Shown here piece by piece: positions 5,862 through 49,959 of a DNA stretch of 64,000 bases (the first letter of the stretch is position 1; the number at the start of each line of letters is the position of its first letter). Position numbers and translations under genes: made by a program. Below the pieces are notes generated by a model. It ran no database searches. It was not told the origin of the DNA and saw only the letters and a list, made by a program, of their open reading frames with translations. Origin of the DNA: Lepidodermella squamata. Its lineage: Eukaryota > Animalia > Gastrotricha. The stretch is taken from the NCBI GenBank assembly GCA_047495785.1, contig JBLDXI010000002.1, forward strand, positions 1,922,001 to 1,986,000, given 5' to 3'.

Positions 5862-6041
5862 AAAAAAAACTACCATACATCGACAATGCGAATGTTTGAT
5901 TTTCTGGTAGTTGCTACTTTGGCAATTATAGGAGTTTGCGCTGATGTTTATTCAAGAATATGTTTATTGATTATTGATACGTAATTTTCAAGAGACCTCC
6001 AAATATTAGGCGAAACAATAGAATGAATCACATATTTTGCC

Positions 6042-6455
6042 TCTTTGCCTCTTCTACGAGCGCTTCGGTCTTCACTTGTCTAATGAAATGACTGTCTAGC
6101 AGATCAGCAGCCGCAGCTCGTTCAGAAGGGTCTTTAACGAGCATCGAGAGAACAAAGCAATGGTATTCTTCTGAATAGGATCAGTCTAGGTCGAATGGTT
6201 TAGGCTCACTCCTACGAAAGGAAGACCATCATTTATGACAAGATTTAAGAACTGAAATTTTCAAACTGAAAACAGTCAAATTTCTTTCAAGAGCGCAATC
6301 GCAATAGTTCTGACTTACTGGCAAGTAGAAATTCGCTAGTTAGAAGAAAGTAACCCCGAGTGACCACCAGTCGCTAGCCTCTGAATTTGGCTTTTTTGAA
6401 ACGTTTCAGGTGCCCTGTACAATGATGTGCCAACGCCAATCAGTGAGATACTCGC
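6042..6455 (-). pseudogene. Diverged fragment of the tandem-kinase gene (kinase-1 C-lobe exons)
   Basis: Aligns with ~16173-16675 (SLIGVGTSLYRAPETF, MLVKDPSERAAAADLL) with a stop/indels and an internal deletion. Confidence 0.85.
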
Positions 6456-7005
6456 GATAACAATGGCGATAACAAGTTGAATATATCGAAATAGCCAGCA
6501 CTCAGCAATAGTAGAGTTTTGCCGTAATTTTGCCGATTTTCCATTTTCGATTCCCAATCAATATTATTATTATTATTATTATCTTTATTTCGAAAAATAT
6601 TCTATCGTATAAAAAAAAATCGGTACAAAACATTCGTGGTTTCAAAAGGGCACGCAGTGCAACAGAAAGAAGAAGGTGTTAGATCAGAAAATGCTCAATA
6701 GGAATGAAATTAATACGAATATATGTACAAAGGATAATTTGTTTGAACACAATTTGAACACAAAGAGATAGACGCAAATATTAGAAGCCACACACTGTAA
6801 AAAATGACTTCTGTGAAATTACTCCCCAAAGAAATAAAAAAAATTCGAAAAAATTTCGAATATTTAGCAATAAATTATTGGAGAATTCACGAATAATAAG
6901 CGATGGAAAATCACCCGATTTGTTTACTTTTCCAACCACTCGATGCTGATTCATCACAACATCTGGCGCCCATGGCGTTTACAGGCATAGTCAGGAGTAG
7001 GACCT

Positions 7006-7579
7006 CTATCTTAAAACTAGCTCCATGGGATTCACCCATGAGAAATAACGCCATTTTTCAGTCGGAGGATCAAACGCGTTCTCCAGTTTCAATGCTATTT
7101 GAGGTGCAAAGTCCAAAGCATTGATATCTGCTTGAAACTGCGAAGTTAGGAGTCTCACAATATCGACGTGGCTCCAGTAAGCGGCAAGGTGAAAAGGCTT
7201 AGTTCCATCTTCATTATCTACATTAACGTTGCAGTTGAATTCCTCTGGACGATTTCCATGTGTCCCCAATTGAGCAGCAATGTGCAACGGTGACGAGCCT
7301 TTCTTGGCGGAGGCATTAACGTCGCAGTTGAATTCTCCTGCAAGCGTTTTGACTACTTCCGTGTGTCCATTTTGAGCAGCGAAGTGCAGCGGTGTCCAGC
7401 TATCCACATCTGCACATCAGTGGCATTATTGTCGCAGGTGAACTTTCCCGTTACGATTTCTGCGTGTCCATTTAAAGCTGCCATGTGCAAAGGTGTATGA
7501 CCATTTTTATTGGAGGCATTAACATCGCACTTGAACTCTCCTGCAAGCATTTTGACGACTTCCGCGTGTCCGTTTAGAG
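7006..7579 (-). pseudogene. Orphaned, frameshifted 3' end of the ankyrin exon of kinase-ANK gene A
   Basis: WTPLHFAAQNGH... and DINALDFAPQIALKLENAFDPPTEKWR match the C-terminal part of the intact 29029-31824 ORF. Confidence 0.85.
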
Positions 7580-8135
7580 CAGTATGGTCCAAGTTCGAAA
7601 AATTTGGAGTTAGGCGTCGGAGTCAGAAATTGCCGAAGGAGTCAACGCCATGTAATTTACATTATTTCGGTACAAAAAGAGTCAGAAATTGTCGAAGGAG
7701 TCAGTGTCGAAGATGGACCTTTCGCTGAGAGGCGGATAGTAATTTTAGCAACCGCGTGGTACGCTCGCTCGCTTGATTATGTACTCTTATTATCCGATTA
7801 GCAGACCACATTTCATTGAATATAACTAATACAGCGAGCGAAGCGATCTTAGCTGGCGGTATTTTTACGTTACTAGGACTGAAAATGAAACAGGCGTTAC
7901 TCAGATCTCGAAATTAACGTTTGAAATAAACGTCAATTGCAAATTACGAATTCTTTGTGTATTTTCGCAGTCGATGGAGTCACACTTGCCTCGACTTCGA
8001 GTCAGATTTACGGAATGAGTCAAAATCTCATTTTGAAGTCACAAACTGCTCTAACCGCCCCGGAGTAACACCGGAGTCAAACAAAAAATTGGAAAGAGTC
8101 AAAAAGACTCCGGAGTCAACGTTTGGACGACGCTG
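7580..8135. mobile_element. hAT-type MITE (556 bp), copy 1, inside the ankyrin exon
   Basis: Imperfect TIRs CAGTATGGTCCAA / TTGGACGACGCTG; 8-bp TSD GTTTAGAG (7572-7579, 8136-8143); subterminal GGAGTCA repeats. Confidence 0.8.
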
Positions 8136-8624
8136 GTTTAGAGCAGCAATGTGCAAAGGCGTGATGCTATTGCAATGTGCAACGGCGTGAATGATGCTCC
8201 ATTGCGGGATTGAAATGGCAGTGGAATTCACCTGCAAGCATTTTTACGATTTCTGCATGTCCGCTTCGAGCAGCGACGTGTAACGGCGTAAAGCCATTAT
8301 TACTGGTGGCATTAACATCGCACTTGAACTCTCCTGCAAGCATTTTGACGACTTCCGCGTGTCCGTTTAGAGCAGTATGGTCCAAGTTCGAAAAATTTGG
8401 AGTTAGGCGTCGGAGTCAGAAATTGCCGAAGGAGTCAACGCCATGTAATTTACATTATTTCGGTACAAAAAGAGTCAGAAATTGTCGAAGGAGTCAGTGT
8501 CGAAGATGGACCTTTCGCTGAGAGGCGGATAGTAATTTTAGCAACCGCGTGGTACGCTCGCTCGCTTGATTATGTACTCTTATTATCCGATTAGCAGACC
8601 ACATTTCATTGAATATAACTAATA

Positions 8625-12720: not shown

Positions 12721-15700
12721 CTATTGCAATGTGCAACGGCGTGAATGATGCTCCATTGCGGGATTGAAATGGCAGTGGAATTCACCTGCAAGCATTTTTA
12801 CGATTTCTGCATGTCCGCTTCGAGCAGCGACGTGTAACGGCGTAAAGCCATTATTACTGGTGGCATTAACATCGCACTTGAACTCTCCTGCAAGAATTTT
12901 GACGATTTCCACGTGTCCACGCTTAGCAGCGTGGTGCAGCGGTGTCCAGCCATACGCATCAGAGGCATTAACGTCGCACTGGAACTCTCCTGCAAGCATT
13001 TTGACGACTTCCGCGTGTCCTTTTAGAACAGCAACGTGCAAAGGTGTCCAGCGACCCTCACAATTAGAGGCAATTAAATAGCTGTTAAACTCTCCTGCAA
13101 GAATTTTGACAACTTTCTCGTGTCCATTCATAGCAGCGAAGAACACAGCTCTGTAGTCAAATTTATTGGAGGCATTAACGTCGCAGTTGAAATCCCCTGC
13201 AAGCATTCTGACGATTTCCACGTGTCCATGCTTAGCAGCGTAGTGCAGCGGTGTCCAGCCATCCTCATCAGAGGCATTAACGTCGCACTGGAACTCTCCT
13301 GCAATTATTCTGACGATTTCTGCGTGTCCATTTATAGCTGCCATGTGCAAAGGTGTATGACCATTTTTATTGGAGGCATTTACGTCGCACTTGAACTCTC
13401 CTGCAAGCCTTTTGACGATTTCCACGTGTCCACGGTTAGCAGCGTAGTGCAGCGGTGTCCAGCCATACTCATCAGAGGCATTAACGTCGCACTGGAACTC
13501 TCCTGCAAGCATTTTGACGACTTCCGTGTGTCCTTTTAGAACAGCAGCGTGCAAAGGTGTCAAGCGACTCTCACCATTAGAGGCATTTAAATGGCTGTTG
13601 AACTCTCCTGCAAGGATTTTGACAACTTTCTCGTGTCCATTCATAGCAGCGAAGAACACAGCTCTGTAGCCAATTTTATTGGAGGCATTAACGTCGCAGT
13701 TGAAATCCCCTGCAAGCATTCTGACGATTTTCGCGTGTCCTTTAAAAGCAGCGTGTTGCAAAGGTGTACTTCCGTCTACCCCAGAATCATTTACGTCGCA
13801 TTTGAACTCTCCTACCAGCATTCGGACGATTTCTGCATGTCCCATCTCAGCAGCAATGTGCAACGGCGTCAAGGTATTCCGAATGGCGGCATTAGTGGCG
13901 CACTTGAACTCTCCAGCAAGCATTTTGACGATTACCGTCTGTCCATAAGCAGCAGCCAAGAGCAGAGGTGTATGACCATCTTTATCGGAGGCATTAGCGT
14001 TGCACTTGAACTCTCCTGCAAGCATTTTGACAACTTTCTCGTGTCCATTCTTAGCAGCGATGTGCAGCGGTGTCCAGCCATTCGCAATGGAAGCATTAAC
14101 GTCACACTGGAACTCTCCTGCAAGTATTCTGACGATTTCTGCGTGTCCATTTAAAGCTGCCATGTGCAAAGGTGTATAACCATCCTTCCCAGAGGCATTT
14201 GCGTCGCAGTCTGAAATTCTTGCTAGCATTTCAATTACATCCAGGCTGCCTTTCATGGCAGCGAGATGCAACGGTGTTAATCCCGTCACAGTTGTAGTGT
14301 TCACTTTGATGTATACGTTTGCGAGAAGTTTAACCACTTCGGCCTGACCCTCCAAAGCTGCGACATGCAATAAATTCATGCCGCGTTCATCTTGTTTTAG
14401 CACGTTTGCCTTCATCGCACCCGCTAGTAGTCCAACAACTTTGGCGTGGCCGTTCTTGACTGCCGCCCAAATTGGGGTCTCTTCATTGTTTGTCGCAGTA
14501 TCGATGCTTACTTGAGATGTCGTTCCCAGGGTTTCGACCGTACGCAGATTGCCGTTATTCGCGGCTACATATATGGGCGTTCTCCCCAATAGGTCCTTAG
14601 ACAGCGGATTAGCATTGAACCTCGTTACCAATAGTTTTGCAATCTCATCATGTCCTTCTTGCGCAGCTAGAAACAACGGGGTCACACCTTCGCTGTTTTC
14701 GCAGTTAACGTTTAATTTTAAAGCTGCGGTTGATAACAGCGATGCGATTTCTTCGATTTTGTTCAGTCTGATGAGGCGAAAAAGCAACTATAAATGCAAT
14801 GATAGCAAGCTTACTCATGATCAAGGAAGAATTCTCCTTACTTTTTCTCCCGCGCTCAGGTCTGGAATTGCAATATTTCCATCGGAAGCTGTTTTCATGT
14901 GCTGATTGGCAATTTGGTCTTCTGTTAAAGAATTATCCGTTGCGTTAAGCAAAGCTAGTGGAGAGACGCGCCTCGAGGTGGTTTTTTCACGAATCATCCC
15001 CATGATCGCGTTTCGGAATTTAAATGAATAACCACGGGAATCGTCAAAGTCTTTTGGATGATTACTGAATGTATAAGATGGTCAAACGAAGGACGACTTA
15101 TTGATTGAAACTTACAAAATGATTGCCAAAGTAGAGTCAAACTGAAAATTTTATTTTGTATGTAGAGCTTTGTTTCCAGCCAGAAGAAATAGCTTACAGG
15201 CATGAAGGAATTAGCCAACTCGAACAAAGTGACACCCAAAGACCACCAGTCGCTCGCGTTCGAGTGATCTTTCTTCGCGAATAGTTCAGGAGCTTTGTAA
15301 AGCTGATAACTGAGTCCGAATTTTCCAACTGGTTGCTGCTTGCTTCTATGTGAGAATTTGTACATGGCACATCACCTCAAATACGTGTTCAAAAACGATC
15401 CTACCTTTCGTAAACTTTCGCCAGCCCGAACCCTCCAAGTTTGACAGAGGCGCTGTTATGGAGAAAAATATTCTTGGGTTCTATTGCGCGATGCAGGATA
15501 CCGCTTGCGTGCAGCTTTTCCACCGCAAAAGCAAGCTGTCGTGACCATTCCATCAACAGACTTTCGGGAATAGATCCAGCCGATTTTTCCTTATAATCAT
15601 CCAAATTTCCATCCGAACAGTATTCCATTACCAAATGATAAATCGCACCTGCAGAGCCATGCTCTTCAAACAATGAAAAAAAGAAATATAAAAATGAAGA

Positions 15701-17808
15701 CAAACATGGCTTTTGACCAATTTTGAGTTGTTTGTCTTGATTAAGGTGGCAGATAATGATTTGTAGTGTGATTTCACATGGAACGGAGAATATAGACACA
15801 ACTTACGCACTCAAAGCACAGTATTACGATAAACGAAAAGTGCATCCGACTCACCCTCAAATGATCCGAAAACCGATAGGATGTTAGGGTGCAACAAATT
15901 CACGAGTTTAAGATTCTATATGTTAAAACCTCTTTTTACATGCATTTTTGATTAAAAAAAAACGGGGCTTTACCTCGTCTCGGCTTAGCTTGATTAGTCG
16001 TTCTGCAAAATTAGGATCGCTGTCATAACTACGAGGAATTAGGCTTAGTTTGAAAGCCTTGACAACATAACGGGTCACGTCTTTGTATCGCTTGCATTGC
16101 ATTGTCGAGCCGAAGATACCTCTTCCGAGAGTCTTTTCACGCTTGAACTCGTGGATTGAGGAAAACATTAACTTCTTTGCTTCTGCTACGGGCGCTTCGG
16201 TCTTCACTTGTCTAATGAAATGACTGCCCAGCAGATCAGCAGCCATAGCTCGTTCAGAAGGGTCTTTAACGAGCATCGAGAAAGCAAAGTAATGGTATTC
16301 TTCTGAATAGGATCGGTCTTGGTCGAAGGGTTTCGGTTCACTCCTAAGAAATGATAACGATTATTTATGACAAGATTTATGAAACGTTCGATTTTAGCGG
16401 TAATCTTATTGTGATATAAGGGGACCGAAATGTCCGATGCGACACTCCAAACTTACCCTGTGATGTCACCTGGGCAATCAAACTGAAAACAGTTAAACTT
16501 CGTTCAAGAGAGCAATCGCAATAGTGCTGACTTACTGGCAAGTAGAAGTTCGCTAGTTCGAAGAAAGTAACCCCGAGTGACCACCAGTCGCTAGCCTGAG
16601 AATTTGGCACATTATGAAACGTTTCAGGTGCCCTGTACAATGATGTGCCAAGACCAATTAGTGAGATACTCGCTGAACTGCGATATGAAGTTAAAGCTCC
16701 TCAGATACTCTTATTGCATAAAAGCTTACTCGCTTGTAGGGGGTCTAGCCAGACCAAAGTCGCCAAGTTTGACAGTTTTCTCATCGTCGCACAAAAATAT
16801 GTTCTTCGGCTTGATGTCGCGATGCAGTACGCCGAGGCTGTGAACCTTTTTGACAGCCGACACCAATTGACAAGCCCAGTTATGCAAGAGGCACTCGGGT
16901 ATTATCGCCTGGGCATCTTTTTTTCGCCTAATGTAGCCTGACAAATCGCCGTGCGAACAATGCTCCGTCACCATGTAATATATTTGATTCCCAGTCTGCC
17001 AATGGTCGAGCGTTTCAATCGGCTCCTTCAGCGGTTCTGCATGAGCAAATATAACGTAAATAGTGATCTATTGTGTCTTCTAATACTGTCTACCAATTTT
17101 ACAAAAAAACAAATGCCTTCTACACAGGTTTTGCGCTTTACTTCGGTCCTGCTTCATATATATATAGGAATATTTCAGAGAATCTCAGATTGGACTGGTT
17201 TTAATTTGAATTCCGCCATGAGCAGCGGAAATCGTGGTGTCTTGTGTCTTGTCACGCACTATTGTCATCTCTACGATACGATTCCGGCCATGGTGGGATC
17301 GCGTCAAAGGGCGCTTATTCAAGGCGTGATTCATTCACGTAGCATGTCCGTGCCATGACCCATGGCGGAATTCCTTTCTAACCTGCCCAATTTGTCATTA
17401 GCTTAAATCCCTTAATGACCTGCGACATCTAAGGCAAGCTTTTCCAATTGATGCCATCATGTACCTACCTGTAAATGCGCCACGGACAGCGACAATGTTG
17501 TCATGCTTCAAGCTCTCAAGTAGTTTGTGCTGGTGGAAAAAAATCAATAAGCGAATGCAATCGAAAAAGCCCAAGTGGTTATAATACCGTACCTCTTCGC
17601 AGCTCAATTTTATGAGTTTCATTGCGACAGTCGCATCGCCACCTTCTTGTCCATAAGTCATCAGAATCACGTTCAGGTTGACAGCCTTAACCACGTAGTC
17701 AGCTAAATCCCCATCTTTCCGCCGACATAGCCATACAAAACCAAAACCTCCTTTTCCCAGTTGTTGAATTCTTTCAAATTCAGATATAGAGGTGAATTCA
17801 GCCGCCAT
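12721..17808 (-). CDS. Tandem kinase-pseudokinase-ankyrin protein, copy A (3'-truncated; possibly a pseudogene)
   Basis: Multi-exon. Kinase 1: GKGGFG, VVK, HRDIKPKNIFL, DFG, APE (NEK-like). Kinase 2: GRGIFG, HRAIEPKNIFL, GGFG. Final exon 14787-12721 has ~20 ankyrin repeats and ends at a frameshift just before the hAT MITE. Confidence 0.85.
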
Positions 17809-21006: not shown

Positions 21007-21655
21007 TCAAATAACAGCCGATTCTAGCTGAGACCGGATAGCATCAAAAGGAGACACGATTGATATTCTGGACGCAATGTGAGGAGCTTGTTCTAACAAG
21101 TTTTGGGCCTCAATACCTGCGTCGGTTTGAACCCGTATAGCACGTGTAATTGATTTAATCGTTCTTTCGGTAATGCGCTTTTCGAAGAGATCAACTCGAG
21201 CATCAAGATGAAGTTGTTTGGTGCTGTAGAGGCGAGGTTTTCTCAAACAGATTTTCAGTGCTATATTTTGAGTGCGTTGCAGGATGTTCATGTTGTCAGT
21301 TGATGTTCCGATGTATGCCTCGCATCCGTGCTCCATGGAGGATCTGATGGTGGCTTTGAAGACCGTTATCGCTTGTTTGACGGGCATGTTTATCTGTCTA
21401 TCGCACAATCGACGCAAGCAAGTGATGCGGCTAGAAACCTTGTCCTGAATCATAGAAATATGGCTGTTAAAATTTAATTTTTTGTCAAAGGTGACCCGGA
21501 GATATTTGATTTCGGGAAGCCAAGGCAGCACGTTACCGTCGAACTCGATTTTGATGCTCTCGTCTTCATCGGCTAGGGAGAAGCGAATTGCCTGGGTTTT
21601 ATCGGCGTTTAATTTTAGTTTGTGGCGGTTGTACCACGTTTGGATTATATAGGCT
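21007..21655 (-). mobile_element. C-terminal RT fragment of a non-LTR retrotransposon (Jockey/I-like)
   Basis: KLKLNADKTQAI...IKYLRVTFDKKLNFNSHI...LQRTQNIALK. Confidence 0.75.
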
Positions 21656-21749
21656 TAGAGCGTCTTCCAGGTCAAATTTTACCTTTAAACGTGAAATTCT
21701 TGTTCTTTCGGAGATAGAAAAAATATTGATATCGTCAGCAAGGCCGCTA

Positions 21750-22875
21750 AAGATTTAATATGTGGGATGGTAAAATTATCAAAAATTGAGTTAGTAAAAA
21801 TTATACTACTGGCATCGGCATGTTCAGGCGCGTTCATAATGATGCGCACCGCCTTATCTTGTAGACTTTGCATTCTTTCGAGCGACCCGTCGTTCGCCTC
21901 GGCAATTATCGTATCATAGTAATGCAGGTGGGAGAATATAAGCCCGTTGGCCATAGCTTTCAAACAATTTCGATTGAGGCCATTTTTTGATGCTACAGTT
22001 AATACGAAAAATCCTTTTCTTGCTTTGGTGCATGCCTTATCGACATGTTCCCGATAGTTAAAGCCGTCATCGATAATTACTCCGAGTAGTTTCATTGATT
22101 TTGTCTGATCAACTTTTTTGTCATCAATAGTGATAGTAATTTTTGGTACCGATGAACTATAAGATAAAATCATGACTTGAGATTTCTTTCCATTTACTTT
22201 GAGCGAATTTGATCCCAGCCAAGTCTAAATCTTTTTGTAAAACTGATTCAATTTCGGTGTCATTCTTTGCCGCGAAGTAGATAGTAGTATCGCATCGGCG
22301 TATTGCACATTGCAGGACGGTGGATTTCAAGGAAGCTAGACGCAGTTCGTTAATGTAAATAGTAAACAACAAAGGGCCTAATACCGAGCCTTGCGGTACT
22401 CCGAACTTCAAATCAGCGGTCGATGAAGTTGTCCCGTTTACTTTTGCGATCTGTTGACGATCAGATAAGTAGCTGTTGATCAATTCCAAAGCAGACTCTT
22501 CAAAGCCAGCGCTACGTAAAGATGATAATATGCCATCTGTGCTCAAGGTGTCGAACGCCTTACTCATATCTATGCTTACTATGGCTATCGTCAAGCCGCG
22601 ATCCAATGCGATACGCCAGTCATTAGTCATTTTTGCCAAGCAGGTGTCTGTTGAGTGAAATTTCCGAAAGCCAAATTGAGCCTTAATTTGAGTGGAGAGA
22701 CATCGTTCAAATTTCCGGAATACAGGTGATAGAATGGGTCGATAGTTACCGACTTGGTCTTTTGCACCGTCCTTGAACAAAGGTGTGACTGTTGCCGTTT
22801 TCCATGCTGAAGGAATTTTCTTCTCCGTAATAACCTTATTGTAAATGAGTGCGAGATGCGGTGCTAAAAAATCTG
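21750..22875 (-). mobile_element. Degraded CR1/L2-type RT
   Basis: WKTATVTPLFK, NYRPI, QFGFRKFHST, DMSKAFDT, GVPQGSVLGPLLF, disrupted YADD, KLLGVIIDD; contains frameshifts. Confidence 0.9.
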
Positions 22876-25800
22876 CTGTTTCCTTAATTACCAACATGCG
22901 CGGCGTTTTGACTTCTCGGCTCTCGGGTTGCTATTCGGCTGCCGATATCCGTGCCTATCTGCCCCTTATTAACTATGTGGAAAAGGTTCGCGACCTGCCG
23001 GCGAAGGACCCCCACCGCCCACCCACTCGCGTCATCGTATTCAAGACGAAGGAGGCGTATGAAGATGCCCGACTCAATGGGATGCAGTGGCTGAACCGGC
23101 GCGTACGCCCCATGCGGCCACCCGTGCTGCCCGCTAAGTGTCGCAAATGTAGTCGATATGGCCACGTCGCTATCGACTGCCCCCTGGCTCCTCCGTCACT
23201 TGTGGCCGCTGCGGCAAAGCGCACCTCACAGAGGGCTGCGGCGCTACCCCCGAACAAGCGTTTTGTTGCAACTGCCCTGAAGGCGGCTCCCCGAGACATT
23301 TCAGTACCTGGCGCGGCTGCCCTGCTTTCAAAGCTGCGCAGTCGGCCGAAGTCGCGTCCCGCCACGCCCGTGCTGCTGCCAAGAGTGAGAAGATCGCCGC
23401 GGCAGCCAATGTTCACCACGGCCGAGGCCCGCCGTCTCCTGTGACGCCCGGGCGCAGCTATGCTCGCACTGCTGCACCGACGCCGCCGCCGCCGCCTGCT
23501 CACCCATCGGCACCTGTCTCCGGGCAGCACTCGGCTGCTCAGCTCAGTGTGGCCGTTGCCGGCATATCGTCTCTTCTTCAAAAAATCCAGCTACAGCTTC
23601 ATCACCTCTCGGATGCAGTGGCAGCTGATCGCGCCAAACAGGATGGCTGGCGTGAGAAGTTCGAGTCGTCCGTGGCTGATCTGGCGGATGAGGTCTACGA
23701 CCTGCGCTCTAGCGGTAACAACCAGTCAATGAGTGTCGACCGTGAACGCTATCGCTACGACGACGACAACTGATATCGTAGTACTAATGGAGTGGAATCT
23801 CCAAGGTGCTAACGGAAAGCCTGTTGAAGTTAGTTACTTGGCTGAAAATGTTGATGCGCTCTTTGTTTTTCTCTCTGAACCCTATTTCTTCCCCCTCTCC
23901 TCTGTCTTTTTCCATCGCTACGCCGTGTTTAGATGTGACAGGGAGCAAGCCCCGGACGATCTGCTGTATCGTGGCTCATGTGGCGGCTCTGCTTTCTTAG
24001 TCCGTGAAGGCGTCACCGTCGTTCGTGAACGTAAGATGCCGCTGTCTGGCCGGAGGCGCAGTGAGTGGCTGCGTATTGATGTCATTCACGACCCTCGTTC
24101 TGCTGTGGTTCGATTGGCTACTGGCTATTGCCCGCCATCCTCCGACTTGGATTTGCGGTTCCCAGAGCAGGAGTTTGAGGAGGCCAACACGTCCCGCACG
24201 CCCTGTGTTTTCGGCGGCGATCTGAACGCTAAGTCTCCTCTGTGGAGTGACGCTGACCACTGAAGTCCACACGGTTATCACCTACATCACATGGTTACCC
24301 GGCTCGGTCTCACCATCCTCAAGTCCGCCCCGACTCACATCGATCTCCGCACTGGCTCTCTCTCGACCCTGGATGTTTGGGTGGTCAATGACGCCGCTTT
24401 ACAGTTTCTTAAAGGGGGAGTTACCGTGGGTGACCGCCTCAGCAGCGACCACTTCAGCACTTCGCTACACCTCGAAATACCCGTGATCAGGGCTCGTCGT
24501 TTGCTGCCTCTTCCCGACCCCACCCCTCGGTTCGATATATCTCGGACCGATCGCCGAGGATTTCAACGGACGCTGTGGGACCTCCTGCCTGCTATTCCTC
24601 TTCCGCAGGTTGGCGACCCTCTGGACCGGCTGCTTGCGTACCGCCGTGCCATCAATGCCGCTATCGTCGAGGCGCGTCGCCTTCATGTACCCCTATGTGA
24701 CCGCAGTGAACTAAAGAAGATTTCCATGTCTGCCGATATGCGCTTGATCCTGAAGCAGAAGCGTGTTCTTGAGCGCGCGATTGGCCCTCATTGTGATCCC
24801 CAGTTGGCAGTAGAGATCAAGCGACTGGACGGCGAGTTTCGAGAAGCTAAGCAACAGCACGAGTTCCGCCGCGACGTTGCGAATCTGCGTATGGTTGAGG
24901 CTCTTTCAGGACAACTTCGGTATCGCGAGGCGTGGGTCCGGTTCCGGCGGCTCGACCGACATCAGCCGCGGCGCTCCAGTGGGCACATGAAACTGGACGG
25001 TGAAACTGTTCTGGCACCGTCCGCTTCGCTTGCTGACGAGTTACTTACCCACTTCGCCGATGACGCCCTACTGCGACCCGGCCGCCGACGACGCCCTGCG
25101 CAAGCGTTGGCTCGAGCTTGAGACCCTGATGGCCACCGATCCTGACCTTCAAAGCAAGGCTACGATTCGTCTGCCAGGCCCTGACGACTTCAGTGTCAGC
25201 ATAGATAATAATAAAGATCGGAAGCTTACGATCCTGCCATAGTGTCAAAATTTTAGGGTGCAAAGGTCACCATGTGCAAAGCCACATTTTTGTGCGTTTT
25301 ATTTGAGCCATGTGCGCCTATCTAAATGCATGTAAAATCGACCCATTTTTAAATCGATTTTTTGAACAACGTCATTTTTGTAATTTATTGGTAACTTGTG
25401 CGCTGGAACAACTTTTTCCGCTCTTTCAAACGAGACCAGGCTCGACTTCCTAGGACCTTTGCAAGGCCATCTATATATTCGCAAAGTAGGTCGCAAAATC
25501 CCGAAGATCAAAATTTGTCGATTATGTCGGGGCGGAAAAAATTGTTAAAATTTGATCAGAAAATGTCAGAAAAAATATTTTCTTTATCAGGATGGACTAA
25601 GCTATCGAAATATATAACTTTTATCCCCGTCCGATTTTTTGGGAGTTTTCCAGTAATTGCGGGGAAATTGTTGTAAGATTGCTCAATTAAGAGTTTTATT
25701 CAATTTTCAACTCAAATAAATCCCAGTTTTCAATGTATTAGACCACAAGCCAATCAGCATCCTCGAAGAAGATTATTTTACCTTTCTTAATGCCGATATG

Positions 25801-27330: not shown

Positions 27331-29028
27331 AATAGAATCGGTAATATTTTGACAGGTTGCATAATTTGGCCTTTGGACAACTCAAATTTCAGTCGGTATT
27401 TAGGGTCATAATGTTTCGATCGGTTAATTTTTCAATTTTTGAAATAGAAAATAAGCAGGAAATATTGGCAAATAGGCGCTTTAAGCCTATGAAGTTAAGA
27501 CATTTCAGCCGGGTCAAATCAGCCTGATGTGAAGCGCTTAGTCAAACCCGTAGAAACATGTCATTTTTCAGACTACAATGTGGAAAAACCTTTCACGCAA
27601 TATGAAGTTTTTCTTTTTGGCGACATTTTCGCAGGTGACAAATAAGCAATGCAGCCACACTTATTATAATGTTATCACTATAGTCCGAATCTTCACTGAC
27701 GGCATCGCTTGCATCAATTCCACCTAATTCCCAGTTATTTCAGCCCCGTAAAATCAGTCCACGATGTTAAGGAGGAAATAATTTGTGGACGCTAAAATTA
27801 ATTAATCTTTTGCAAAAGTGTTCGTTCATTCAAGGACATTTCAGCTGGCAACAATGAAGCAATTTAGCCGAAATTTTCATCAAAATTTGATCCGAATTTG
27901 TATTAAAACTGAGCTCGCATTTCGACTGTCAATAAGGCTGATCGGTCCCTTGCTGTTATGTCGCTAGCGCAAATGTCGCCGAATACCGATTACGCACTAT
28001 TTCGCACTCGTACTATTCTCAATTACGAGTCACATAATTTGTCACATAATCGCATCATATAAAAAAAAATGCCTGCGGTTTTGTCCCCTGCTGAAATGTC
28101 GCACGCCCATGAATTAATAGGTTTGCTGCTTGGTATAATGAATCATCAAGCATGACTTGGAGAAAATTAACAAAAAATTAGGTCATTTTCTTTTTTGCCG
28201 TCGCTGGGCTGGGTCTTGATTCGTAGGAATTAGAAAAAATCGCTCCAAGAATGACTCGGCGAGTGGTTGGTAATTTCGGGCAAAAAACATGTTTAATGAA
28301 TGAAACGCCACTTGATTTTGTTAGTAGCTTCAACGATAAACCGAGTAAAGAAATGCGTTCTTGTTGAGCTAATAATTTCAACAAAAATAATGAAATGGTC
28401 TGTTTATCGCTTGTTTTGTTAATAATTTCATCTCTGTTGGAGATAAAGAAACGTACCCCATGACCGTTAAACCTTACGCAGCCGATAATTTCGCTCATTT
28501 GCCTCCCAATAGTGTAGTCCGTGCACTGTCTAAGACAAGCGCGTGTCCCCGTTGTGCCGGCGCCTTATTTGTCATGTCTGTTTGTTGTTGGTTTTATTTT
28601 GCTTTTAAATTTATTAACTGTACATGTCGGATAAGGACAATAAAAAATATGTTCGTTCGTTTTCGTTCGTATATCTTCTTATATGCTGTCTTTTTCTGAT
28701 TTATTATACCTTGTATTGTAAACCGAAAGGTGGGAGGAGTGTGGCGAAGCCACTTGTTGATTAAATGTTTTGAAATTGGCGGTCGACCTTCACCGAACCG
28801 GATAAACTACTTGGAATGTGAATGTAGCGCCAAATGGCGGATTATGATTGGCCGAACACCCGTATAAATATGGTTTGTAAATAATATGTAAGATATCTGA
28901 GAGAATACTGGCAACAACAGACCACGTGATATGAACACTCTCTAGTGGTCCTCTTGCCACAATGAAAAAGGAGAAAAAATAAAAAATCAGAATGAAAACA
29001 TTTATTTTCATCAGATATAGACCAAAAT

Positions 29029-32000
29029 TTACAAAATTGCACCGGCCGCTAAGAGAAACTCCACCGTTTTCTGTTTGTCTTCATCCGACACATCGTCATC
29101 GCAATTCTGGGCTATTAGCAAAGCTGTCCAGCCCGTCGACGGCACTCTGTAATTGACATCAGCGCCGAGCTCACGAATCAGCAAGTCAACAACAGCATGG
29201 CGACCTTTGAAGGATGCAGCCATTAGAACAGAACGCCATTTTTCAGATGAAGGATCAAACGAGTTCCCCAGTTTCGCCGCTATTTTAGGTGCAAAGTCCA
29301 AAGCATTGATATCTGCTGGAAACTGCGAAGTTAGAAGTCTCACAATATCGACGTGGCTCGAGTAAGCGGCAACGTGTAGAGGCGTAGTTCCATCTTCATT
29401 TTCTACATTAACCTGGCAGTTGTAATCCCCTGCAAGCATTCGGAAAATTTCCGTGCTTCCATTTTGAGCAGCGACGTGCAACGGCGTCGATCCTTTCTTG
29501 GTGGTGGCATTAACGTTGCATTTTAATTCCGCAAGCGTTTTGACGAATTCCGCGTGTCCATTATGAGCAGCAATGTGCAGCGGTGTCCAGCCATCCTCAT
29601 CAGAGTCATTGATATGGCAGTTGTACTCCCCTGCAAGCATTCGGAAAATTTCCGTGCTTCCATTTTGAGCAGCGACGTGCAACGGCGTCGAGCCTTTCTT
29701 GGTGGTGGCATTAACGTTGCATTTTAATTCTGCAAGCGTTTTGACGACTTCCGTGTGTCCATTCAAAGTAGCCATGTGCAGCGGTGTCCAGCCATCCTTT
29801 CTAGAGGTATTAACGTCGCAGCTGAACTCTCCTGCAAGCATTCTGACGACTTCCGCGTGTCCATTTAGAGCAGCGTGGTGCAAAGGTGTATCGCCATCTT
29901 TCCCAGAGGCATTAACGTCGCAGTTGATCTCTCCTACCAGCATTCGGACGATTTCTGCATGTCCCATCTGAGCAGCAATATGTAACGTCGTCCAGGTATT
30001 CTTAATGGCGGCATTAACATTGCAGTTGCCAGCAAGCATTTTAACGATTTCCGCGTGTCCATTAAGAGCAGCCATGTGCAAAGGTGTATGATCATGTCTA
30101 TCAGAGGCATTAACGTCGCAGTTGAAGTCTTCTGCAAGCATTCTGACGATTTCCGCGTGTCCTTGTAGAGCAGCAATGTGCAAAGGGGTGTAGCTATTCT
30201 CTGTTGCGGGATTGAAATGGCAGTGGAATTCGCCTGCTAGCATTTTTACGATTTCTGCATGTCCTTTTTGGGCAGCGATATGCAACGGCGTTAAGCCATT
30301 ATTACCGGAGGCATTAACGTCGCAGGTGAACTCTCCTGCAAGCATTCTAACGACCTCCGCGTGACCATACACAGCAGCCATGTGCAAAGGTGTCCAGCCA
30401 GCCTCATTGGAGGCATTCACGTCGCAGTTGAACTCTGCCGCAAGCATTATTCTGACGATTTCTGCGTGTCCATTCATAGCAGCGATGTGCAAAGGTCTAT
30501 GGCCATCTTTATTGGAGGCATTCACGTCGCAGTTGAACTCTCCAGTAAGCATGTTGACAATTTCCGCATGAACATTTTCAGCGGCCATGTGCAAAGGTGT
30601 AAGGCCATCTTTATTGCAGGCATTAACGTCGCAGTCGAATTCTCCTGCAAGCATTCTGACGATTTCCGCGTGTCCTTGTAGAGCAGCAATGTGCAAAGGC
30701 GTATTGCAATCCTTCCCAGAGGCATTTACGTTGCAGTTGATCTGTTCTGCAAGCAATCTGACGACATCCGCGCGTCCAATCTGAGCAGCGATGTGCAACG
30801 GTGTCCAGCCATTCCTTCCAGAGGCATTAACGTCGCACTTGAACTCTCCTGCAAGCACTTTGACGATATCAGCCTGTCCATTTAGGGCAGCCATGTGCAA
30901 AGGTGTATGACCTTTTTTATCGGAGGCATTAACGTCGCACTTGAACTCTCCTGCAAGCATTCTGAAGATTTCCGCTTGTCCTTGTAGAGCAGCAATGTGC
31001 AAAGGTGTCCAGCCATTCTCATCAGAGGCATTGCTATGGCTGTTGAACTCTCCTGCAAGCATTCTGACGACTTTCTCGTGTCCATTCTTAGCAGCGATAT
31101 GCAGCGGTGTCCAGCCATCCTTTCCAGTGGCATTAACCTCGCACTTGAACTCTCCTGCAAGCACTTTGACGATTTCCGCGTGTCCATTTAGAGCAGAGAC
31201 GTGCAAAGGTGTATAACCATCCTTCCCAGAGGCATTTACGTCGCAGTCTGAAATTCTTGCTAGCATTTCAATTACATCCAGGCTGCCTTTCAGGGCAGCG
31301 AGATGCAATGGTGTTAATCCTGCCACAGTTCTTGTGTTCACTTTGATGTATTCGTTTGCGAGCAGTTTAACCACTTCGGCCTGGCCCTCCAAAGCTGCGA
31401 CATGCAATAAAGTCACGCCGCGTTCATCCTGCTTTTGCACGTTAGCCTTCATCGCACCCGCTAGTAGTCCAACAACCTTGGCGTGGCCGTTTTTGACTGC
31501 CGCCCAAATTGGGGTCTCATCATTGTTTGCCGCAGTATCGATGCTCACTTGAGATACCGTTCCCAGGGTTTCGACCGTACGCAGATTGCCGTTATTCGCA
31601 GCTACATATATGGGCGTTCTCCCCAATAGGTCCTTAGACAGCGGATTAGCATTGAACCTCTTTACCAATTGCTTTGCAATCTCATCATGTCCTTCTTGGG
31701 CAGCTAGAAACAACGGGGTCACGCCTTCGAAGTTTTCGCAGTTAACGTTAATTTTCACAGCTGGGGTTGATAACAGCGATTCGATTTCTTCGATTTTGTT
31801 CAGTCTGATAAGGCGAAAAAGCAACTATAAATACAATGATAGCAAGCTCAAGGAAGAATTCGCCTTACCTTTTCTCCTGCGCTCAGGTCCGGAATAGCAA
31901 GATTTCCATCGGAAGCTGTTTTCATTAGCTGATTGGCGATTTGGTCTTCTGTTAACAAATTATCCGTTGCGTTAAGCAAAGCTAGTGGAGAGACGCGCCT

Positions 32001-34914
32001 CGTGCTGATTTTTTCACGAATCATCCCCATGATCGCGTTTCGGAATTTAAATGAATAACCGCGGGAATCGTCAAAGTCTTTCGGATGATTACTGAATGAG
32101 TAAGAGGGTCAATCGAAGGACGGCTTAGTGATTGAAACTTACAAAATGATTGCCAAAGTAGAGTCAAACTGAAAATTTTATTTTGTATGTAGAGCTTTGT
32201 TTCCAGCCAGAAGAAATAGCTTACAGGCATGAAGGAATTAGCCAACTCGAACAAAGTGACACCCAAAGACCACCAGTCGCTCGCGTTCGAGTGATCTTTC
32301 TTCGCGAATAGTTCAGGAGCTTTGTAAAGCTGATAACTGAGTCCGAATTTTCCAACTGGTTGCTGCTTGCTTCTATGTGAGAATTTGTACATGGCACATC
32401 ACCTCAAATACGTGTTCAAAAACGATCCTACCTTTCGTAAACTTTCGCCAGCCCGAACCCTCCAAGTTTGACAGAGGCGCTGTTATGGAGAAAAATATTC
32501 TTGGGTTCTATTGCGCGATGCAGGATACCGCTTGCGTGCAGCTTTTCCACCGCAAAAGCAAGCTGTCGTGACCATTCCATCAACAGACTTTCGGGAATAG
32601 ATCCAGCCGATTTTTCCTTATAATCATCCAAATTTCCATCCGAACAGTATTCCATTACCAAATGATAAATCGCACCTGCAGAGCCATGCTCTTCAAACAA
32701 TGAAAAAAAGAAATATAAAAATGAAGACAAACATGGCTTTTGACCAATTTTGAGTTGTTTGTCTTGATTAAGGTGGCAGATAATGATTTGTAGTGTGATT
32801 TCACATGGAACGGAGAATATAGACACAACTTACGCACTCAAAGCACAGTATTACGATAAACGAAAAGTGCATCCGACTCACCCTCAAATGATCCGAAAAC
32901 CGATAGGATGTTAGGGTGCAACAAATTCACGAGTTTAAGATTCTATATGTTAAAACCTCTTTTTACATGCATTTTTGATAAAAAAAAAACGGGGCTTTAC
33001 CTCGTCTCGGCTTAGCTTGATTAGTCGTTCTGCAAAATTAGGATCGCTGTCATAACTACGAGGAATTAGGCTTAGTTTGAAAGCCTTGACAACATAACGG
33101 GTCACGTCTTTGTATCGCTTGCATTGCATTGTCGAGCCGAAGATACCTCTTCCGAGAGTCTTTTCACGCTTGAACTCGTGGATTGAGGAAAACATTAACT
33201 TCTTTGCTTCTGCTACGGGCGCTTCGGTCTTCACTTGTCTAATGAAATGACTGCCCAGCAGATCAGCAGCCATAGCTCGTTCAGAAGGGTCTTTAACGAG
33301 CATCGAGAAAGCAAAGTAATGGTATTCTTCTGAATAGGATCGGTCTTGGTCGAAGGGTTTCGGTTCACTCCTAAGAAATGATAACGATTATTTATGACAA
33401 GATTTATGAAACGTTCGATTTTAGCGGTAATCTTATTGTGATATAAGGGGACCGAAATGTCCGATGCGACACTCCAAACTTACCCTGTGATGTCACCTGG
33501 GCAATCAAACTGAAAACAGTTAAACTTCGTTCAAGAGAGCAATCGCAATAGTGCTGACTTACTGGCAAGTAGAAGTTCGCTAGTTCGAAGAAAGTAACCC
33601 CGAGTGACCACCAGTCGCTAGCCTGAGAATTTGGCACATTATGAAACGTTTCAGGTGCCCTGTACAATGATGTGCCAAGACCAATTAGTGAGATACTCGC
33701 TGAACTGCGATATGAAGTTAAAGCTCCTCAGATACTCTTATTGCATAAAAGCTTACTCGCTTGTAGGGGGTCTAGCCAGACCAAAGTCGCCAAGTTTGAC
33801 AGTTTTCTCATCGTCGCACAAAAATATGTTCTTCGGCTTGATGTCGCGATGCAGTACGCCGAGGCTGTGAACCTTTTTGACAGCCGACACCAATTGACAA
33901 GCCCAGTTATGCAAGAGGCACTCGGGTATTATCGCCTGGGCATCTTTTTTTCGCCTAATGTAGCCTGACAAATCGCCGTGCGAACAATGCTCCGTCACCA
34001 TGTAATATATTTGATTCCCAGTCTGCCAATGGTCGAGCGTTTCAATCGGCTCCTTCAGCGGTTCTGCATGAGCAAATATAACGTAAATAGTGATCTATTG
34101 TGTCTTCTAATACTGTCTACCAATTTTACAAAAAAACAAATGCCTTCTACACAGGTTTTGCGCTTTACTTCGGTCCTGCTTCATATATATAGGGTGTCCC
34201 ATAAGTAACGCAAGCAAAAAAAAATAAACGGAAAGGGAACAGAAACTCAAAATGAGAGACGAACTCACGTCTCACGATCTCACGGCCAGAAAATGTTTAG
34301 AAAAATTCGAAACATCACGAGAATAGTAATCAAGTATGTGGCATGTTGATGGGATTGAAAACGTCCGGAGAAATTTGGTCCAACCGGGTAAAATACCGAA
34401 AATTACCAGTTACCATCGGGGTGTGCAAGGCGTGATTCATTCATGTAACAAGTCCGTGCCATGACCCATGGCAAAATTCCTTTCTAACCTGCCCAATCTG
34501 TCATTAGCTTAAATCCCTTTTATGACCTACGACATAAGGCAAGCTTTTCCAATTGATGCCAGCATGTGCCTACCTGTAAATGCACCACGGACAGCGACAA
34601 TGTTGTCATGCTTCAAGCTCTCAAGTAATTTGTGCTGATGAAAAATATCAAAATAAGCAAATGCAATCGAAAAAGCCCAAACGGCTATAAAGCCGTACCT
34701 CGTCGCAGCTCAATTTTATGAGTTTCATTGCGACAGTCGCATCGCCACTTTCTTGTCCGTAAGTCATCAGAATCACGTTCAGGTTGACAGCCTTAACCAC
34801 GTAGTCAGCTAAATCCCCATCTTTCCGCCGGCATAGCCATACAACACCAAAACCTCCTTTTCCCAGTTGTTGAATTCTTTCAAATTCAGATATAGAGGTA
34901 AATTCAGCCGCCAT
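29029..34914 (-). CDS. Tandem kinase-pseudokinase-ankyrin protein, copy B (apparently intact)
   Basis: Same exon series as copy A. Final exon 31824-29029 is an open 931-codon frame with ~26-27 ankyrin repeats and a C-cap. Confidence 0.9.
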
Positions 34915-35480: not shown

Positions 35481-35960
35481 CACATTGGTCCGTGCTTTAT
35501 CGGACGATCCTGTCCGAACACGAACGGACAAGGAGTAGGGCCGGTAAGGGGTGAAAACTGCTCAAATTTGAAATTAGATGAAACTTCCAGTTCCCCGGCC
35601 AATTGTCCTATTGTCCGGCCTCTCTAGTCTTTTTCATTACTTCTGACATACTTCTGTGAATCATAGTCTCATGTTCCGAGTAAATATTATTTCCCTTTAT
35701 AAAAGTTTACTGTAATAATTGCATGAAGTCTACTCAGAAATCAATGATAATGGATCGATTTTTATCGAAAATAAGAGTGTAATAAAACCATAGGCTCCAG
35801 GTATGTTATTATTTGACCAAGAACGTCACAACCCTGCCTTTATTAAATGTGAAACAGAAGTTATAGCGGAAATCTCGCCACTATGTTTTCAAGTTTGATC
35901 TGCTCACGTGAAAATTGCTATTTAACCACCGCAAAAATTATAATACAAAAAGTTCAAAAA

Positions 35961-37540
35961 ATGTCGCTAAATTATTTAATAATTTTGGCCGCAAGTTCGG
36001 CACTGGTTGCTAGTGATAACATATTTATCCAGAGAAATTCCGCCGCCGAGCAGTTGAGGCAGAAGTTCAACGAAATATGCCCGGCGTCCATGTCGGAAAG
36101 CCTGCCCTCCGACTGGGTGATTGCCAGCAATTACGAGAAACCTCTCTACGTGAAAGGCGTTTTCTTGTTATTCCGATTTGTCGGGATCGACGACCTTGCT
36201 CAAACCGGGTCGGTTTGGGGCCTTTTCACGTTTTACTGGAACTACCCATGCCCGGCACCTTCTTGTTTTGAGCTGTTAGGAAACTCACCTCAGACTTGCC
36301 AGAATCAATCCAAGTACGAACATCTGTATTTCATCCAAAGAAGCAACGATGTTTGGACGCCGAAAATCACGCATTTAAACGCAGTGCAGCAAGCTCGGGA
36401 CGTTGAAGAGCAGTCTGGAGGGGCTGTGATAGTTCGGCCTTTCAAACGGTCCGAAACTGTCGAACAGTCGTCGATTGGTCGCTATGATTCAGAGTGCGAG
36501 TTTCATTTCAAAACGTTCCCGTTCGACGTCGTCCTATGCTCGTTGGTTTTCGATTCAGACGAAGAGACGAACTATGTTCAGTACACTATCGACCAGTTTG
36601 ACATTGATGTCTCGGCGAGAAAGAGGTTTCTAGCTGATAGCGACATTTGGGAGCTACATGGGAATTTGTCATATAAATCCAAGGCAGTCACGCAGGTAAA
36701 AATCTGAAATTCAGAAAAAATTGTAGAAAATATTTAAAAAATATCAAATTTTAAATTTTCGAAAATTCGAATTCAATTTGACTGGAACCCATAATTTACT
36801 GAAGCGGAACCAAATCTTAAAACTTAAAAATTAAAAAATTTATGAGAAGTACCATTTTATTCAAATTATTTCGAAAAATCCCATTTGCCCTAATACCGAA
36901 AATTACCGAATATTTACAAAATTATTAAATTGTCGCCAAAAATATCCAGAATAAAAAAACAGTTGCCCAACTAATTGGACCCTGAAATGGTATTTGATGC
37001 AGTGAAAGAAATTAAAAATTAAAAATTAAAAATTTGGTAAAATGAAGGTGGAAATATTTTTTTATACAGACTGATGTTTCGAAAAACTATTCTCGAATGG
37101 TGTTCAGCATAGCGTTCAAGCGAAAACCCGACTACTACGTCGGCACTGTCATTTTGCCCGCCTTTGTGCTTTACGTCCTGCAACTGGTCGGACTTGCCGT
37201 CCCGCCGCACATGCCCGATCGATCAGCTTTTGGCATCACCGTCGTCCTCGCCTTTATTGTCATCCTCGGCATCGTCTGCAGTGCAATACCGAAAACAAGC
37301 GAGGTCATTTATTTGGTTACTATGATTCTCATCAAATTCGTCTGTGGCTCACTGATCACTGTATACGAACTGGCGACGTGTGCGTGCCAGATTAAGCCGA
37401 GCCATTGTCCCAAAATAAAAATTGCGAAAATCGGCAAAATTTCGGCAATTCGAATGTTTGATTGTCTGGTAGCTGCCATTTTCAGTGTCTTAGGAATCTG
37501 TGCTGATGCCTATTTATTTGCAAGAATGATTCCAAAATAA
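35961..37540 (+). CDS. Cys-loop ligand-gated ion channel subunit (divergent, nAChR-superfamily), ~401 aa, exons 35961-36695 and 37070-37540
   Basis: Signal peptide MSLNYLIILAASSALVAS; loop A VWTPKI; Cys-loop CEFHFKTFPFDVVLC; four TM segments; phase-0 GT-AG intron. Confidence 0.9.
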
Positions 37541-48580: not shown

Positions 48581-49959
48581 TCAAAATAGCTTTAATTTTA
48601 TTGAGTCGGACTGCACGTTCAGGCTCACAGCAATCTTTGTCTGCTTGATGAGTAGACTTTCGTGGACCAAGCAGTCCCACCTGTTGCGACACTTGCGTAA
48701 TACTTTGAAGTGAGCATTGATGTCAAAGCTATCAGGCAGTTTGTGTGTGGCCAGATGTTTGCCAATTGAACTCGAAGCGAGCTTGTGTTCCTCGACTCGT
48801 TGATGTAGGTGCCGCGTGGTCATCCCGACATAGCCAGCGTCACACTGGCCACATGAAAAACGATATACGACGCACTGGCGGTTTACGAGTTCAGGCTTGA
48901 TCTCCTTCGCTCCGAAATTTTCGATGATTTTCCGGCTTGTGAACATGGCCTGAACCGCCACCCGGAGTTTTCCAGAAAGATCGTTGAGCCTCATCTTGAC
49001 TTGTCGAGCAATTTTCCCGTCTTTGTAGGGTAACACAAAGCGTACAGGTTCGATCTTCGTCTCCTCAGTTTTTATACCATTGGGGTAGACTTTGTCAACA
49101 AATGATGCCAACAGCTTCTCAAACATGGCTAAAGGGTATTGAAGATTCAAAAAAGTTTTTCGCAGATGATCAACTTCCCTGCTGAATCCGAGCCATTCAC
49201 TGTTAAGCCGGTAGGCGCGATACAGCATGGTCTTGATGAGGCACGTCTTATACTTGGTGTCGGTGTGACTCTGGAAGTGCAACAACAGCCCGGTGTCCGT
49301 TGGTTTGTGGTACACCTCAGTCTTCAGAACCGACCCAGTTGTCTTCACGAGGGCACCGCAGAAAGCGATCTGGTTGTTCTGTTCAATTTCCATGGTGAAT
49401 TTCACCGACGGATGAAGACCGTTGAGTACTTCGAGGAAATGATTCGCTGCAGTTACGCCTTTCATGATAGTCAGAGTATCGTCAACAAACCGACGATAGA
49501 AAGCGGGCAGTTGTTTGCTCTTGCTCAGGCGTTCTTCCAGCATGCTCATGAAGGCATTGGCCATTAGTGGTCCAAGTGGCGAGCCCATCGCGACGCCTTC
49601 GACTTGGATGTATAAGGAACCATTGTAAGTGAACAGCTGATCCTTGACTGCTAGATTTAGCAACGTTCGCAGGTTGTCCTTAGTCAACTTGAGTTTATAT
49701 TTTCGGTTGAACCATCCGCCTCTGAAGGCTTTGTCCACGAGATACTCGATGGTTTCGGCAACCGGAACGTTCGTGAAGAGTGAAGTCACGTCGTACGAGA
49801 CCAGAATTTCTCCAGGATTCAGTTTCAAACCGTTAACTTCTTTCTCGATGAAATTCAGGATATCAGGTATCATCCTGTCATTCGAAGCGAGTGGCTTGAG
49901 AAGTTGATCCAGCCATGCAGCCAATTTGAAGTTGTAGGTGCCAGTCGCCGACAAGATCG
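48581..49959 (-). repeat. Inverted duplicate of the 3' ~1.4 kb of the Penelope ORF
   Basis: Reverse complement of ~51149-52526; identical protein from ILSATGTYNFK onward. Confidence 0.95.

Follow-up and report, generated by a model that had tools for sequence, protein, structure and literature searches.

A putative kinase-pseudokinase tandem joined to a long ankyrin array in a gastrotrich gene family

Introduction

Fusions of kinases with ankyrins have been described, as have kinase-pseudokinase tandems, and we found no described protein that has both. In JAKs and GCN2, a pseudokinase regulates an adjacent active kinase in the same polypeptide; in RNase L and ILK, ankyrins accompany a catalytically dead kinase fold that serves as scaffold or regulator. 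NEKs function at centrosomes and cilia, and organisms whose ciliature is complex have expanded sets of them. Here we analyze a gene, copy B, from a 64,000-nucleotide stretch of the gastrotrich Lepidodermella squamata (assembly GCA_047495785.1, contig JBLDXI010000002.1, positions 1,922,001 to 1,986,000 of the forward strand), which we call the window and whose first letter is position 1 throughout. Copy B is probably an intact member of a lineage-specific family of NEK-like kinase-ankyrin genes, with an active-looking first kinase domain (K1), a second domain (K2) that reads as a maintained pseudokinase, and a tandem head that arose either by fusion or by duplication and loss.

The nearest parallel described so far is in Giardia, where ankyrin repeats (1-26 of them) are borne by 133 of the 198 Neks and the majority are pseudokinases; deletion of a repeat alters localisation, and the authors tie the expansion of Neks to subcellular targeting and call the association unique to that parasite (PMC3218828). 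Copy B resembles these Nek-ankyrin and Protein 21.1 proteins in having an N-terminal NEK-like kinase, a domain that is often dead, followed by variable ankyrins, and in belonging to a very large, lineage-specific family with fast turnover. It differs in that Giardia is a diplomonad with TALM-type repeats, whereas copy B comes from an animal and has repeats of TPLH type with a period of 34 amino acids, and in that the head of copy B has two kinase domains, an arrangement of which the Giardia paper makes no mention (the word 'tandem' occurs 0 times; PMC3218828).

Like the JAKs and GCN2, whose pseudokinase structure has been described (PMC12867742), copy B would hold an active kinase beside a maintained pseudokinase in one chain, and the K2 core counts TYK2 and GCN2 among its best solved matches. 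In contrast to them, copy B has its active-looking domain first, its kinases are NEK-like, and it is without FERM/SH2 or tRNA-synthetase-like parts. Cereal tandem kinase proteins of the Rpg1, WTK/Yr15 and Pm36 class share with copy B two kinase folds in tandem, one of them degenerate, which is a likeness of layout only; for them, too, duplication and the fusion of different kinases are both discussed as origins, the question that arises for copy B. Unlike copy B, they belong to the plant receptor-like kinase lineage, usually have no long repeat array, and have genetic proof of an immune role; plant receptor-like kinase chains were absent from the 60 best solved matches listed, which were headed by NEK, GCN2, PKR, ULK and CHK1. 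RIPK4/ANKK1 and DAPK1 are, like copy B, soluble animal proteins with an N-terminal kinase and C-terminal ankyrins, but they have one kinase (of RIPK/TKL or CAMK type) and 8-11 repeats where copy B has two kinases and ~26 repeats, and the K1 core has no RIPK or DAPK chains in its 60 best solved matches. RNase L and ILK differ from copy B in that their ankyrins are N-terminal and few (5-9) and in that they have no active kinase partner domain.

Results

Copy B runs on the minus strand from its ATG at 34914 to its stop at 29029, exactly the span given in an initial annotation of the window. Its 12 exons, bounded by GT..AG at 11/11 introns, form an unbroken frame with a coding sequence of 4,635 nucleotides (1,544 codons plus stop), in which Pfam recognizes pieces of Pkinase in exons 3, 4, 6, 8 and 9 and 21-22 Ank units in the 931-amino-acid last exon; the annotation's proposal of a single gene for kinase, pseudokinase and ankyrins is thus plausible. 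The kinase begins at residue 9, and the N-terminus has neither a signal peptide nor a membrane segment. Judged by its sequence, copy B is a real, intact gene, predicted to encode a soluble protein of ~1,544 amino acids.

K1, encoded by exons 1-6, contains GKGGFG, VVK, an alpha-C Glu (E72), HRDIKPKN, DFG and APE, such that every motif of an active eukaryotic protein kinase is present (glycine loop, VAIK Lys, alpha-C Glu, HRD..N, DFG and APE). K1 accordingly reads as the annotation had it, with all catalytic motifs, and it appears to be an active kinase. K2, encoded by exons 6-11, retains GRGIFG, VVK, the alpha-C Glu and APE, and has HRAIEPKN and GGFG instead of the active motifs. It has thereby lost the catalytic Asp (HRA for HRD), the catalytic-loop Lys (K>E) and the Mg-binding Asp (GFG for DFG); with the HRD and DFG aspartates gone and the VAIK Lys kept, it classes as a pseudokinase.

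The window contains a second copy of the gene, copy A, and the annotation had pointed to the dead K2 motifs and open K2 frame in both. The motifs and the frame hold up, but the two copies are not independent witnesses, because a tract running from exon 3 to exon 10 is near-identical between them while the flanking exons and introns are 73-97% identical; this tract looks like gene conversion, or else like a patch exchanged very recently. Independent witnesses are provided by the ten other tandem paralogs, 10/10 of which have HRAIEPKN and GGFG. Across the tandem family, K2 cores thus have HRAIEPKN...GGFG in 12/12 genes, and K1 cores retain HRD...DFG, with the exception of one HHD and of broken copies. 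In paralog pairs whose dS exceeds 0.5, the ratio of nonsynonymous to synonymous divergence (dN/dS) ranges from 0.15 to 0.32 in K2 and from 0.17 to 0.36 in K1. Because the dead motifs recur in 12/12 tandem genes and dN/dS is ~0.2, K2 is best described as a maintained pseudokinase, under purifying selection as strong as that on K1, and not as a decaying remnant.

All searches and trees were run exon by exon. A family profile of the core exon compared with solved structures scored NEK1 at 82.7 bits, NEK7 at 79.9, GCN2 at 78.3 and PKR at 77.3, and a profile of the N-lobe exon scored NEK1 at 34.6 bits and the runner-up at 29.5. Among solved structures, human NEK1 is at the top for single exons and profiles, with NEK7, GCN2, PKR, NEK2 and ULK3 within a few bits; for the single K2 core sequence, TYK2, GCN2 and CHK1 rank above NEK1. 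'NEK-like' is therefore a fair label, NEK1 being the best match by 3-5 bits only, and the annotation's 'NEK-derived' is weakly supported by the first place of NEK1 in the family profiles and says more than this narrow lead over NEK7, GCN2, PKR and others allows.

A search of the animal's own genome (121.2 Mb, 151 contigs) revealed at least 150 kinase-core exons of the copy B type. Exon 6, which bridges K1 and K2, has 13 full-length copies in the genome, 12 of them in tandem K1-K2 genes; these genes lie on contigs C2 (five, plus a fragment), C42 (three), C7, C32, C74 and C24. The family to which copy B belongs is large, fast-changing and found so far in the L. squamata genome alone; the annotation had allowed for a conserved single-copy housekeeping ortholog, and copy B is instead multi-copy and lineage-specific. 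In comparisons of copy B with the tandem genes at C2:1222k or C7:2296k, K1 has a dS of ~1.0 and K2 a dS of 0.17-0.28, a mismatch that the conflict between the K1 and K2 trees mirrors. The copies would thus be reshuffled continually by module exchange and gene conversion. Separately, the tandem genes at C7:2295-2305k and C32:105-115k are near-identical exon by exon and differ in the last 15 codons; the pair may represent uncollapsed haplotypes (haplotigs) or a very recent segmental duplication.

Two other subfamilies have tandem heads of their own, with a bridging exon of the same style. In one, a gene on contig C43 (C43:138.3-143.2k) encodes a dead kinase (LLRNIEPKH, GNFA), then an active-looking kinase (HRDIKPKN, DFG), then ~7 ankyrin repeats. 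In the other, a gene on contig C19 (C19:1968.9-1975.0k), each core has the other as its sister with 100/100 support; the first core is degenerate (HRDIKPRR, DFS), and ~3 ankyrin repeats follow. The C19 gene is, from its trees, a genuine in-place duplication, and the K1/K2 pair of copy B looks unlike it.

The annotation had taken K2 to have arisen by internal duplication, on the grounds that K1 and K2 have introns at equivalent places. The match itself is stronger than was claimed: paired exons of K1 and K2 measure 61/61, 307/259, 142/148 and 26/26 nucleotides, and their phases are identical. The deduction from it fails, however, because the positions are family-wide: all family members that we examined, among them the single-kinase genes, have an N-lobe exon with the ending ...L[SC]..E and a C-lobe exon with the ending FELAN...P, so shared introns show only that K1 and K2 belong to the family. 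In separate, unjoined trees of three homologous exons (core, N-lobe and C-lobe), K2 groups not with K1 but with 17 single-kinase-ankyrin genes, here termed sA (contigs C15, C36, C73, C4, C10 and C42), with support of 80/79 (core), 100/97 (N-lobe) and 98/97 (C-lobe). The sA genes have a Met just before the N-lobe and intact HRDIKPKN and DFG, and they share with the tandem genes a linker like that of exon 11 and the ankyrin N-cap (61-70% identity). The segment comprising K2, linker and ankyrins thus corresponds to a whole sA-type gene, to which K1 would be a more distant, added module.

The ankyrin array consists of an N-cap, 24 contiguous repeats with a period of 34 amino acids, and two further repeats within a conserved C-terminal cap, a parse of 24 + 2 that agrees with the ~26 repeats counted in the annotation. 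Repeat positions 5-8 (TPLH), 10-11, 14, 22, 28 and 31 are near-fixed, T-P being found in 18/19 repeats and L-H being invariant, and positions 1, 2, 4, 9, 12, 13, 27, 33 and 34 are the most variable. The latter nine positions are the usual binding face of ankyrins. The array thus reads as one in which the scaffold is kept and variability lies at the usual binding-face positions, a pattern common to ankyrin proteins generally. Between the ankyrins of copies A and B, dN/dS is 0.52 at the face and 0.35 at the scaffold, with no excess over 1; synonymous divergence is unequal (1.31 vs 0.42), and therefore the A and B repeats are not orthologously aligned and the comparison of face with scaffold is a weak test.

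Spliced contigs from a public run of 2015 (X1) reproduce introns 1 and 9 of copy B exactly (joints 34699/34634 and 32225/32168), and a third spliced joint approximates intron 8. The X1 contigs are short and fragmentary and leave exon 3 uncovered, several of their 'opposite strand' joints within the ankyrin repeats resemble assembly artefacts, and a second public run, X2, is genomic and not RNA. At the junction of kinase and ankyrins, intron 11 is 44 nucleotides long, in phase 0 and flanked by consensus splice sites; the kinase-to-ankyrin interval of copy B contains neither a stop nor a polyadenylation signal; the frame of exon 12 opens at the splice acceptor, with its first Met only ~190 residues in; and the layout of exon 11 followed by exon 12 is conserved across the tandem genes and the single sA genes. 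Because of these four features, copy B is likely to be expressed as one transcript from kinase through ankyrin.

We also looked for relatives outside this genome. No relative of the bridging exon was found among 1.84 billion proteins, a collection from which the animal's own proteins are absent and in which this 123-amino-acid query detects fairly close relatives only. The search returned two matches, a diatom multi-kinase protein with 30% identity over the N-lobe and an unrelated protein of 337 amino acids. A word search with the N-terminal 170 amino acids of the ankyrin exon returned generic ankyrin proteins only (27-41% identity), and its kinase-bearing matches (P0003, from an oomycete; P0029; P0085; P0108) are unrelated kinase-ankyrin proteins. 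A literature search found no described animal kinase-pseudokinase-ankyrin protein, and the paper reporting the L. squamata assembly (122 Mb, 157 contigs) leaves kinases and ankyrins unmentioned (PMC11660948). What is new here is the relationship of K2 to the sA genes, together with the estimates of selection, the tract of conversion between copies A and B, and the tandem layouts that arose independently.

Discussion

Fusion is favored over duplication as the origin of the tandem head, and we lean toward it with modest confidence. Within a head-to-tail array, a K1-type gene would have been joined in frame to the beginning of a kinase-ankyrin gene of sA type, for which a single in-frame deletion, reaching from the end of the upstream kinase as far as the start codon of its neighbor, would suffice; the alternative is an old duplication followed by one loss, that of K1 in the sA line. 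K2 would have lost catalysis after the tandem head formed. In the resulting protein, the ankyrin solenoid would dock the molecule on a partner or cell structure, K1 would do the phosphorylation, and K2 would serve beside it as a non-catalytic regulatory or scaffolding module, as in the JAKs and GCN2.

Several observations weigh against an intact gene with a fused head. The ankyrin exon (691-1,375 amino acids) reaches the conserved C-cap in only 5 of the 12 tandem genes, and much of the tandem family may be decaying, or some of the truncations could be errors of an assembly built from amplified DNA. None of the X1 contigs shown spans intron 11, and the joints backed by RNA sit in regions in which copy A matches copy B completely or at 97%. 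A clade of K1 and K2 is not rejected by individual approximately unbiased (AU) tests (p = 0.073, 0.076 and 0.20), the placement of K1 relative to other single-kinase genes varies between the exon trees, and the putative donor lineage of K1 is drawn from BLAST scores. The unspanned intron and the seven of 12 tandem paralogs that look truncated would fit a locus that is not one functional gene, its kinase and ankyrin exons being separate transcription units or copy B being a young pseudogene that is open by chance. We consider this very improbable: the short phase-0 intron with consensus sites, the acceptor at which the ankyrin frame opens far ahead of its first Met, and the layout shared with the tandem and sA genes all speak for one unit, and a 4.6-kb frame with dN/dS of ~0.2 in both kinases is unexpected for a pseudogene. 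True internal duplication, in which five kinase exons were copied in place and the sA genes later lost K1 before K2 degenerated, is to our minds a good deal less remote, if still fairly unlikely. The exon sizes and phases of the two halves match, the C-lobe exon tree joins K1, K2 and sA against the other single-kinase genes (72/86), the K1+K2 clade survives each single AU test, and the C19 gene shows that in-place duplication happens in the family. But the intron positions, being family-wide, are uninformative; K2 is nearer to sA than to K1 in 3/3 exon trees, and a constraint that unites K1 with K2 in one clade lowers the log-likelihood by 18.5, 16.3 and 8.7 units, the three AU p values combining to 0.034 by Fisher's method. 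Moreover, other single-kinase genes fall between K1 and K2 in the core-exon tree (98/91), and the nearest single-kinase genes of K1 by BLAST are distinct from sA, as at C74:835-836k (core 63%, N-lobe 55%). Fusion therefore remains the origin that we prefer for the head.

What the protein does is a further point on which readings diverge. The annotation's suggestion was a sensor convergent with cereal tandem kinases, in which ankyrins bind ligand and the pseudokinase regulates the kinase. Taken as an intracellular immune sensor, the protein would bind pathogen-derived ligands through its variable ankyrins, and the pseudokinase would release the active kinase, as its regulator or as a decoy. The family has traits expected of such a sensor: it is large, lineage-specific and arranged in tandem arrays, it turns over fast (broken copies, conversion tracts, transposon insertions), its repeat number varies, as seen from the spread of ankyrin exon lengths, and its variability is concentrated at the usual ankyrin binding face. 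The same population-genetic hallmarks, however, fit the Giardia Nek/Protein 21.1 expansion, which has been tied to subcellular targeting (PMC3218828); the crude comparison of face and scaffold between copies A and B gives no value above 1, though with shuffled repeats this is a weak test; the kinases are not of the plant receptor-like type; and nothing in this analysis links the family to infection. We regard an immune sensor as distinctly improbable. Cytoskeletal or ciliary targeting, by which ankyrins would tether NEK-like kinases and pseudokinases to the elaborate locomotory ciliature of the gastrotrich and the tandem head would be one of several variants, seems to us unlikely as well, but less so. 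NEK1, NEK7 and NEK2 are the best-matching solved kinases, deletion of a repeat shifts localisation in Giardia (PMC3218828), and the gastrotrich family likewise mixes active-looking and dead heads. Against this, the NEK margin is just 3-5 bits, the repeats are of the ordinary TPLH type and not the TALM type of Giardia, and the likeness to Giardia is one of layout, not of demonstrated homology. A broader proposal, to which we give little credence, is that the family forms a large, rapidly reshuffled intracellular recognition repertoire of NEK-like kinase and pseudokinase heads on variable ankyrins like those of designed ankyrin repeat proteins (DARPins), its tandem heads having been fused from neighboring paralogs several times and in either order. 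If true, animals would have their own equivalent of the tandem-kinase immune receptors of plants, and the family would form a natural series of transitions from kinase to pseudokinase.

Returning to copy B as an intact kinase-pseudokinase-ankyrin gene, its family offers a natural experiment on the way in which a redundant catalytic domain turns into a conserved pseudokinase: one genome holds the active-looking single-kinase genes, their dead counterparts in tandem genes, and at least two more independent tandem layouts. The locus also carries two lessons for the reading of such genes, namely that shared intron positions within a big paralogous family cannot alone prove internal duplication, and that adjacent copies may agree merely through gene conversion.

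Features of the window

The exons of copy B and the related features are collected in Table 1. The ankyrin array of copy A is interrupted by ~4.1 kb of non-ankyrin DNA (8386-12510), which is flanked on both sides by a direct repeat of ~430 bp (7957-8385 and 12511-12939). A short element with an open reading frame (ORF) beginning 'MELGVGVRNCRR...' is found at 7604-7801 and again at 8397-8594, within ankyrin debris.

Table 1. Positions of copy B exons, copy A and associated features in the window
Feature	Position	Strand	Description
Exon 1	34699..34914	-	Start Met and K1 N-lobe: GKGGFG, VVK, alpha-C Glu as last residue; Met start kept in paralogs
Exon 2, 61 nt	34574..34634	-	K1 helix C to beta-4 (HKLLESLKHDNIVAVRGAFT); length and phase equal to exon 7
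Exon 3	33757..34063	-	K1 core with HRDIKPKN and DFG; Pfam Pkinase 2.4e-18; best solved relative NEK1
Exon 4	33563..33704	-	K1 activation segment, APE, helix F; ends FELANFYLP
Exon 5, 26-nt micro-exon	33484..33509	-	K1; size and phase equal to exon 10
Exon 6, bridging exon	33001..33370	-	K1 C-terminal end, ~15-aa linker and K2 N-lobe in a single exon
Exon 7, 61 nt	32882..32942	-	K2 helix C to beta-4
Exon 8	32432..32690	-	K2 core with HRAIEPKN and GGFG (dead catalytic loop and Mg site); Pfam Pkinase 1.5e-15
Exon 9	32225..32372	-	K2 activation segment, APE, helix F
Exon 10, 26-nt micro-exon	32143..32168	-	K2
Exon 11	31869..32091	-	K2 C-terminal end and linker into ankyrin array; counterparts in single-kinase sA genes
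Exon 12	29029..31824	-	N-cap, 24 contiguous 34-aa repeats, 2 C-terminal repeats with family C-cap, stop; Pfam Ank_2 5.8e-190
AATAAA polyadenylation signal	29001..29006	-	23 nt past stop; read directly in sequence
Copy A	12721..17808	-	Same 12-exon layout; ankyrin ORF stops early, 688 aa (680 aa from BLAST anchor), without C-cap
Putative conversion tract	copy B 32143..34063 vs copy A 15116..17036	-	1 mismatch in 1,921 nt, introns included
Debris of further copies	5986..8385	-	Kinase exon fragments with stops (5986-6455); ankyrin pieces and degenerate C-terminal tail (7006-8385)
nt, nucleotides; aa, amino acids.

The genes neighboring copy B are ordinary animal genes. Directly upstream of it lies a gene for a Cys-loop ligand-gated ion channel (35883-37540, plus strand), with the ligand-binding and membrane parts on separate exons. 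Two tandem intron-less GT10 fucosyltransferase genes (55454-58097, plus strand) are present farther along, together with a TENT5/FAM46-like nucleotidyltransferase (59404-60267, minus strand; NTP_transf_7 2.9e-59) and an ORF with a catalytic domain of tyrosine-kinase type (63138-63959, minus strand). Mobile elements are represented by a 596-amino-acid ORF with a MULE transposase domain and a SWIM-like CxCxnCxH motif (2774-4564, minus strand) by long interspersed nuclear elements (LINEs), and by retrotransposon ORFs for reverse transcriptase and endonuclease (21007-25121 and 48581-52526). In the second of these retrotransposon regions, at 48.6-52.5 kb, the same reverse transcriptase ORF occurs twice as an inverted duplicate, head to head.

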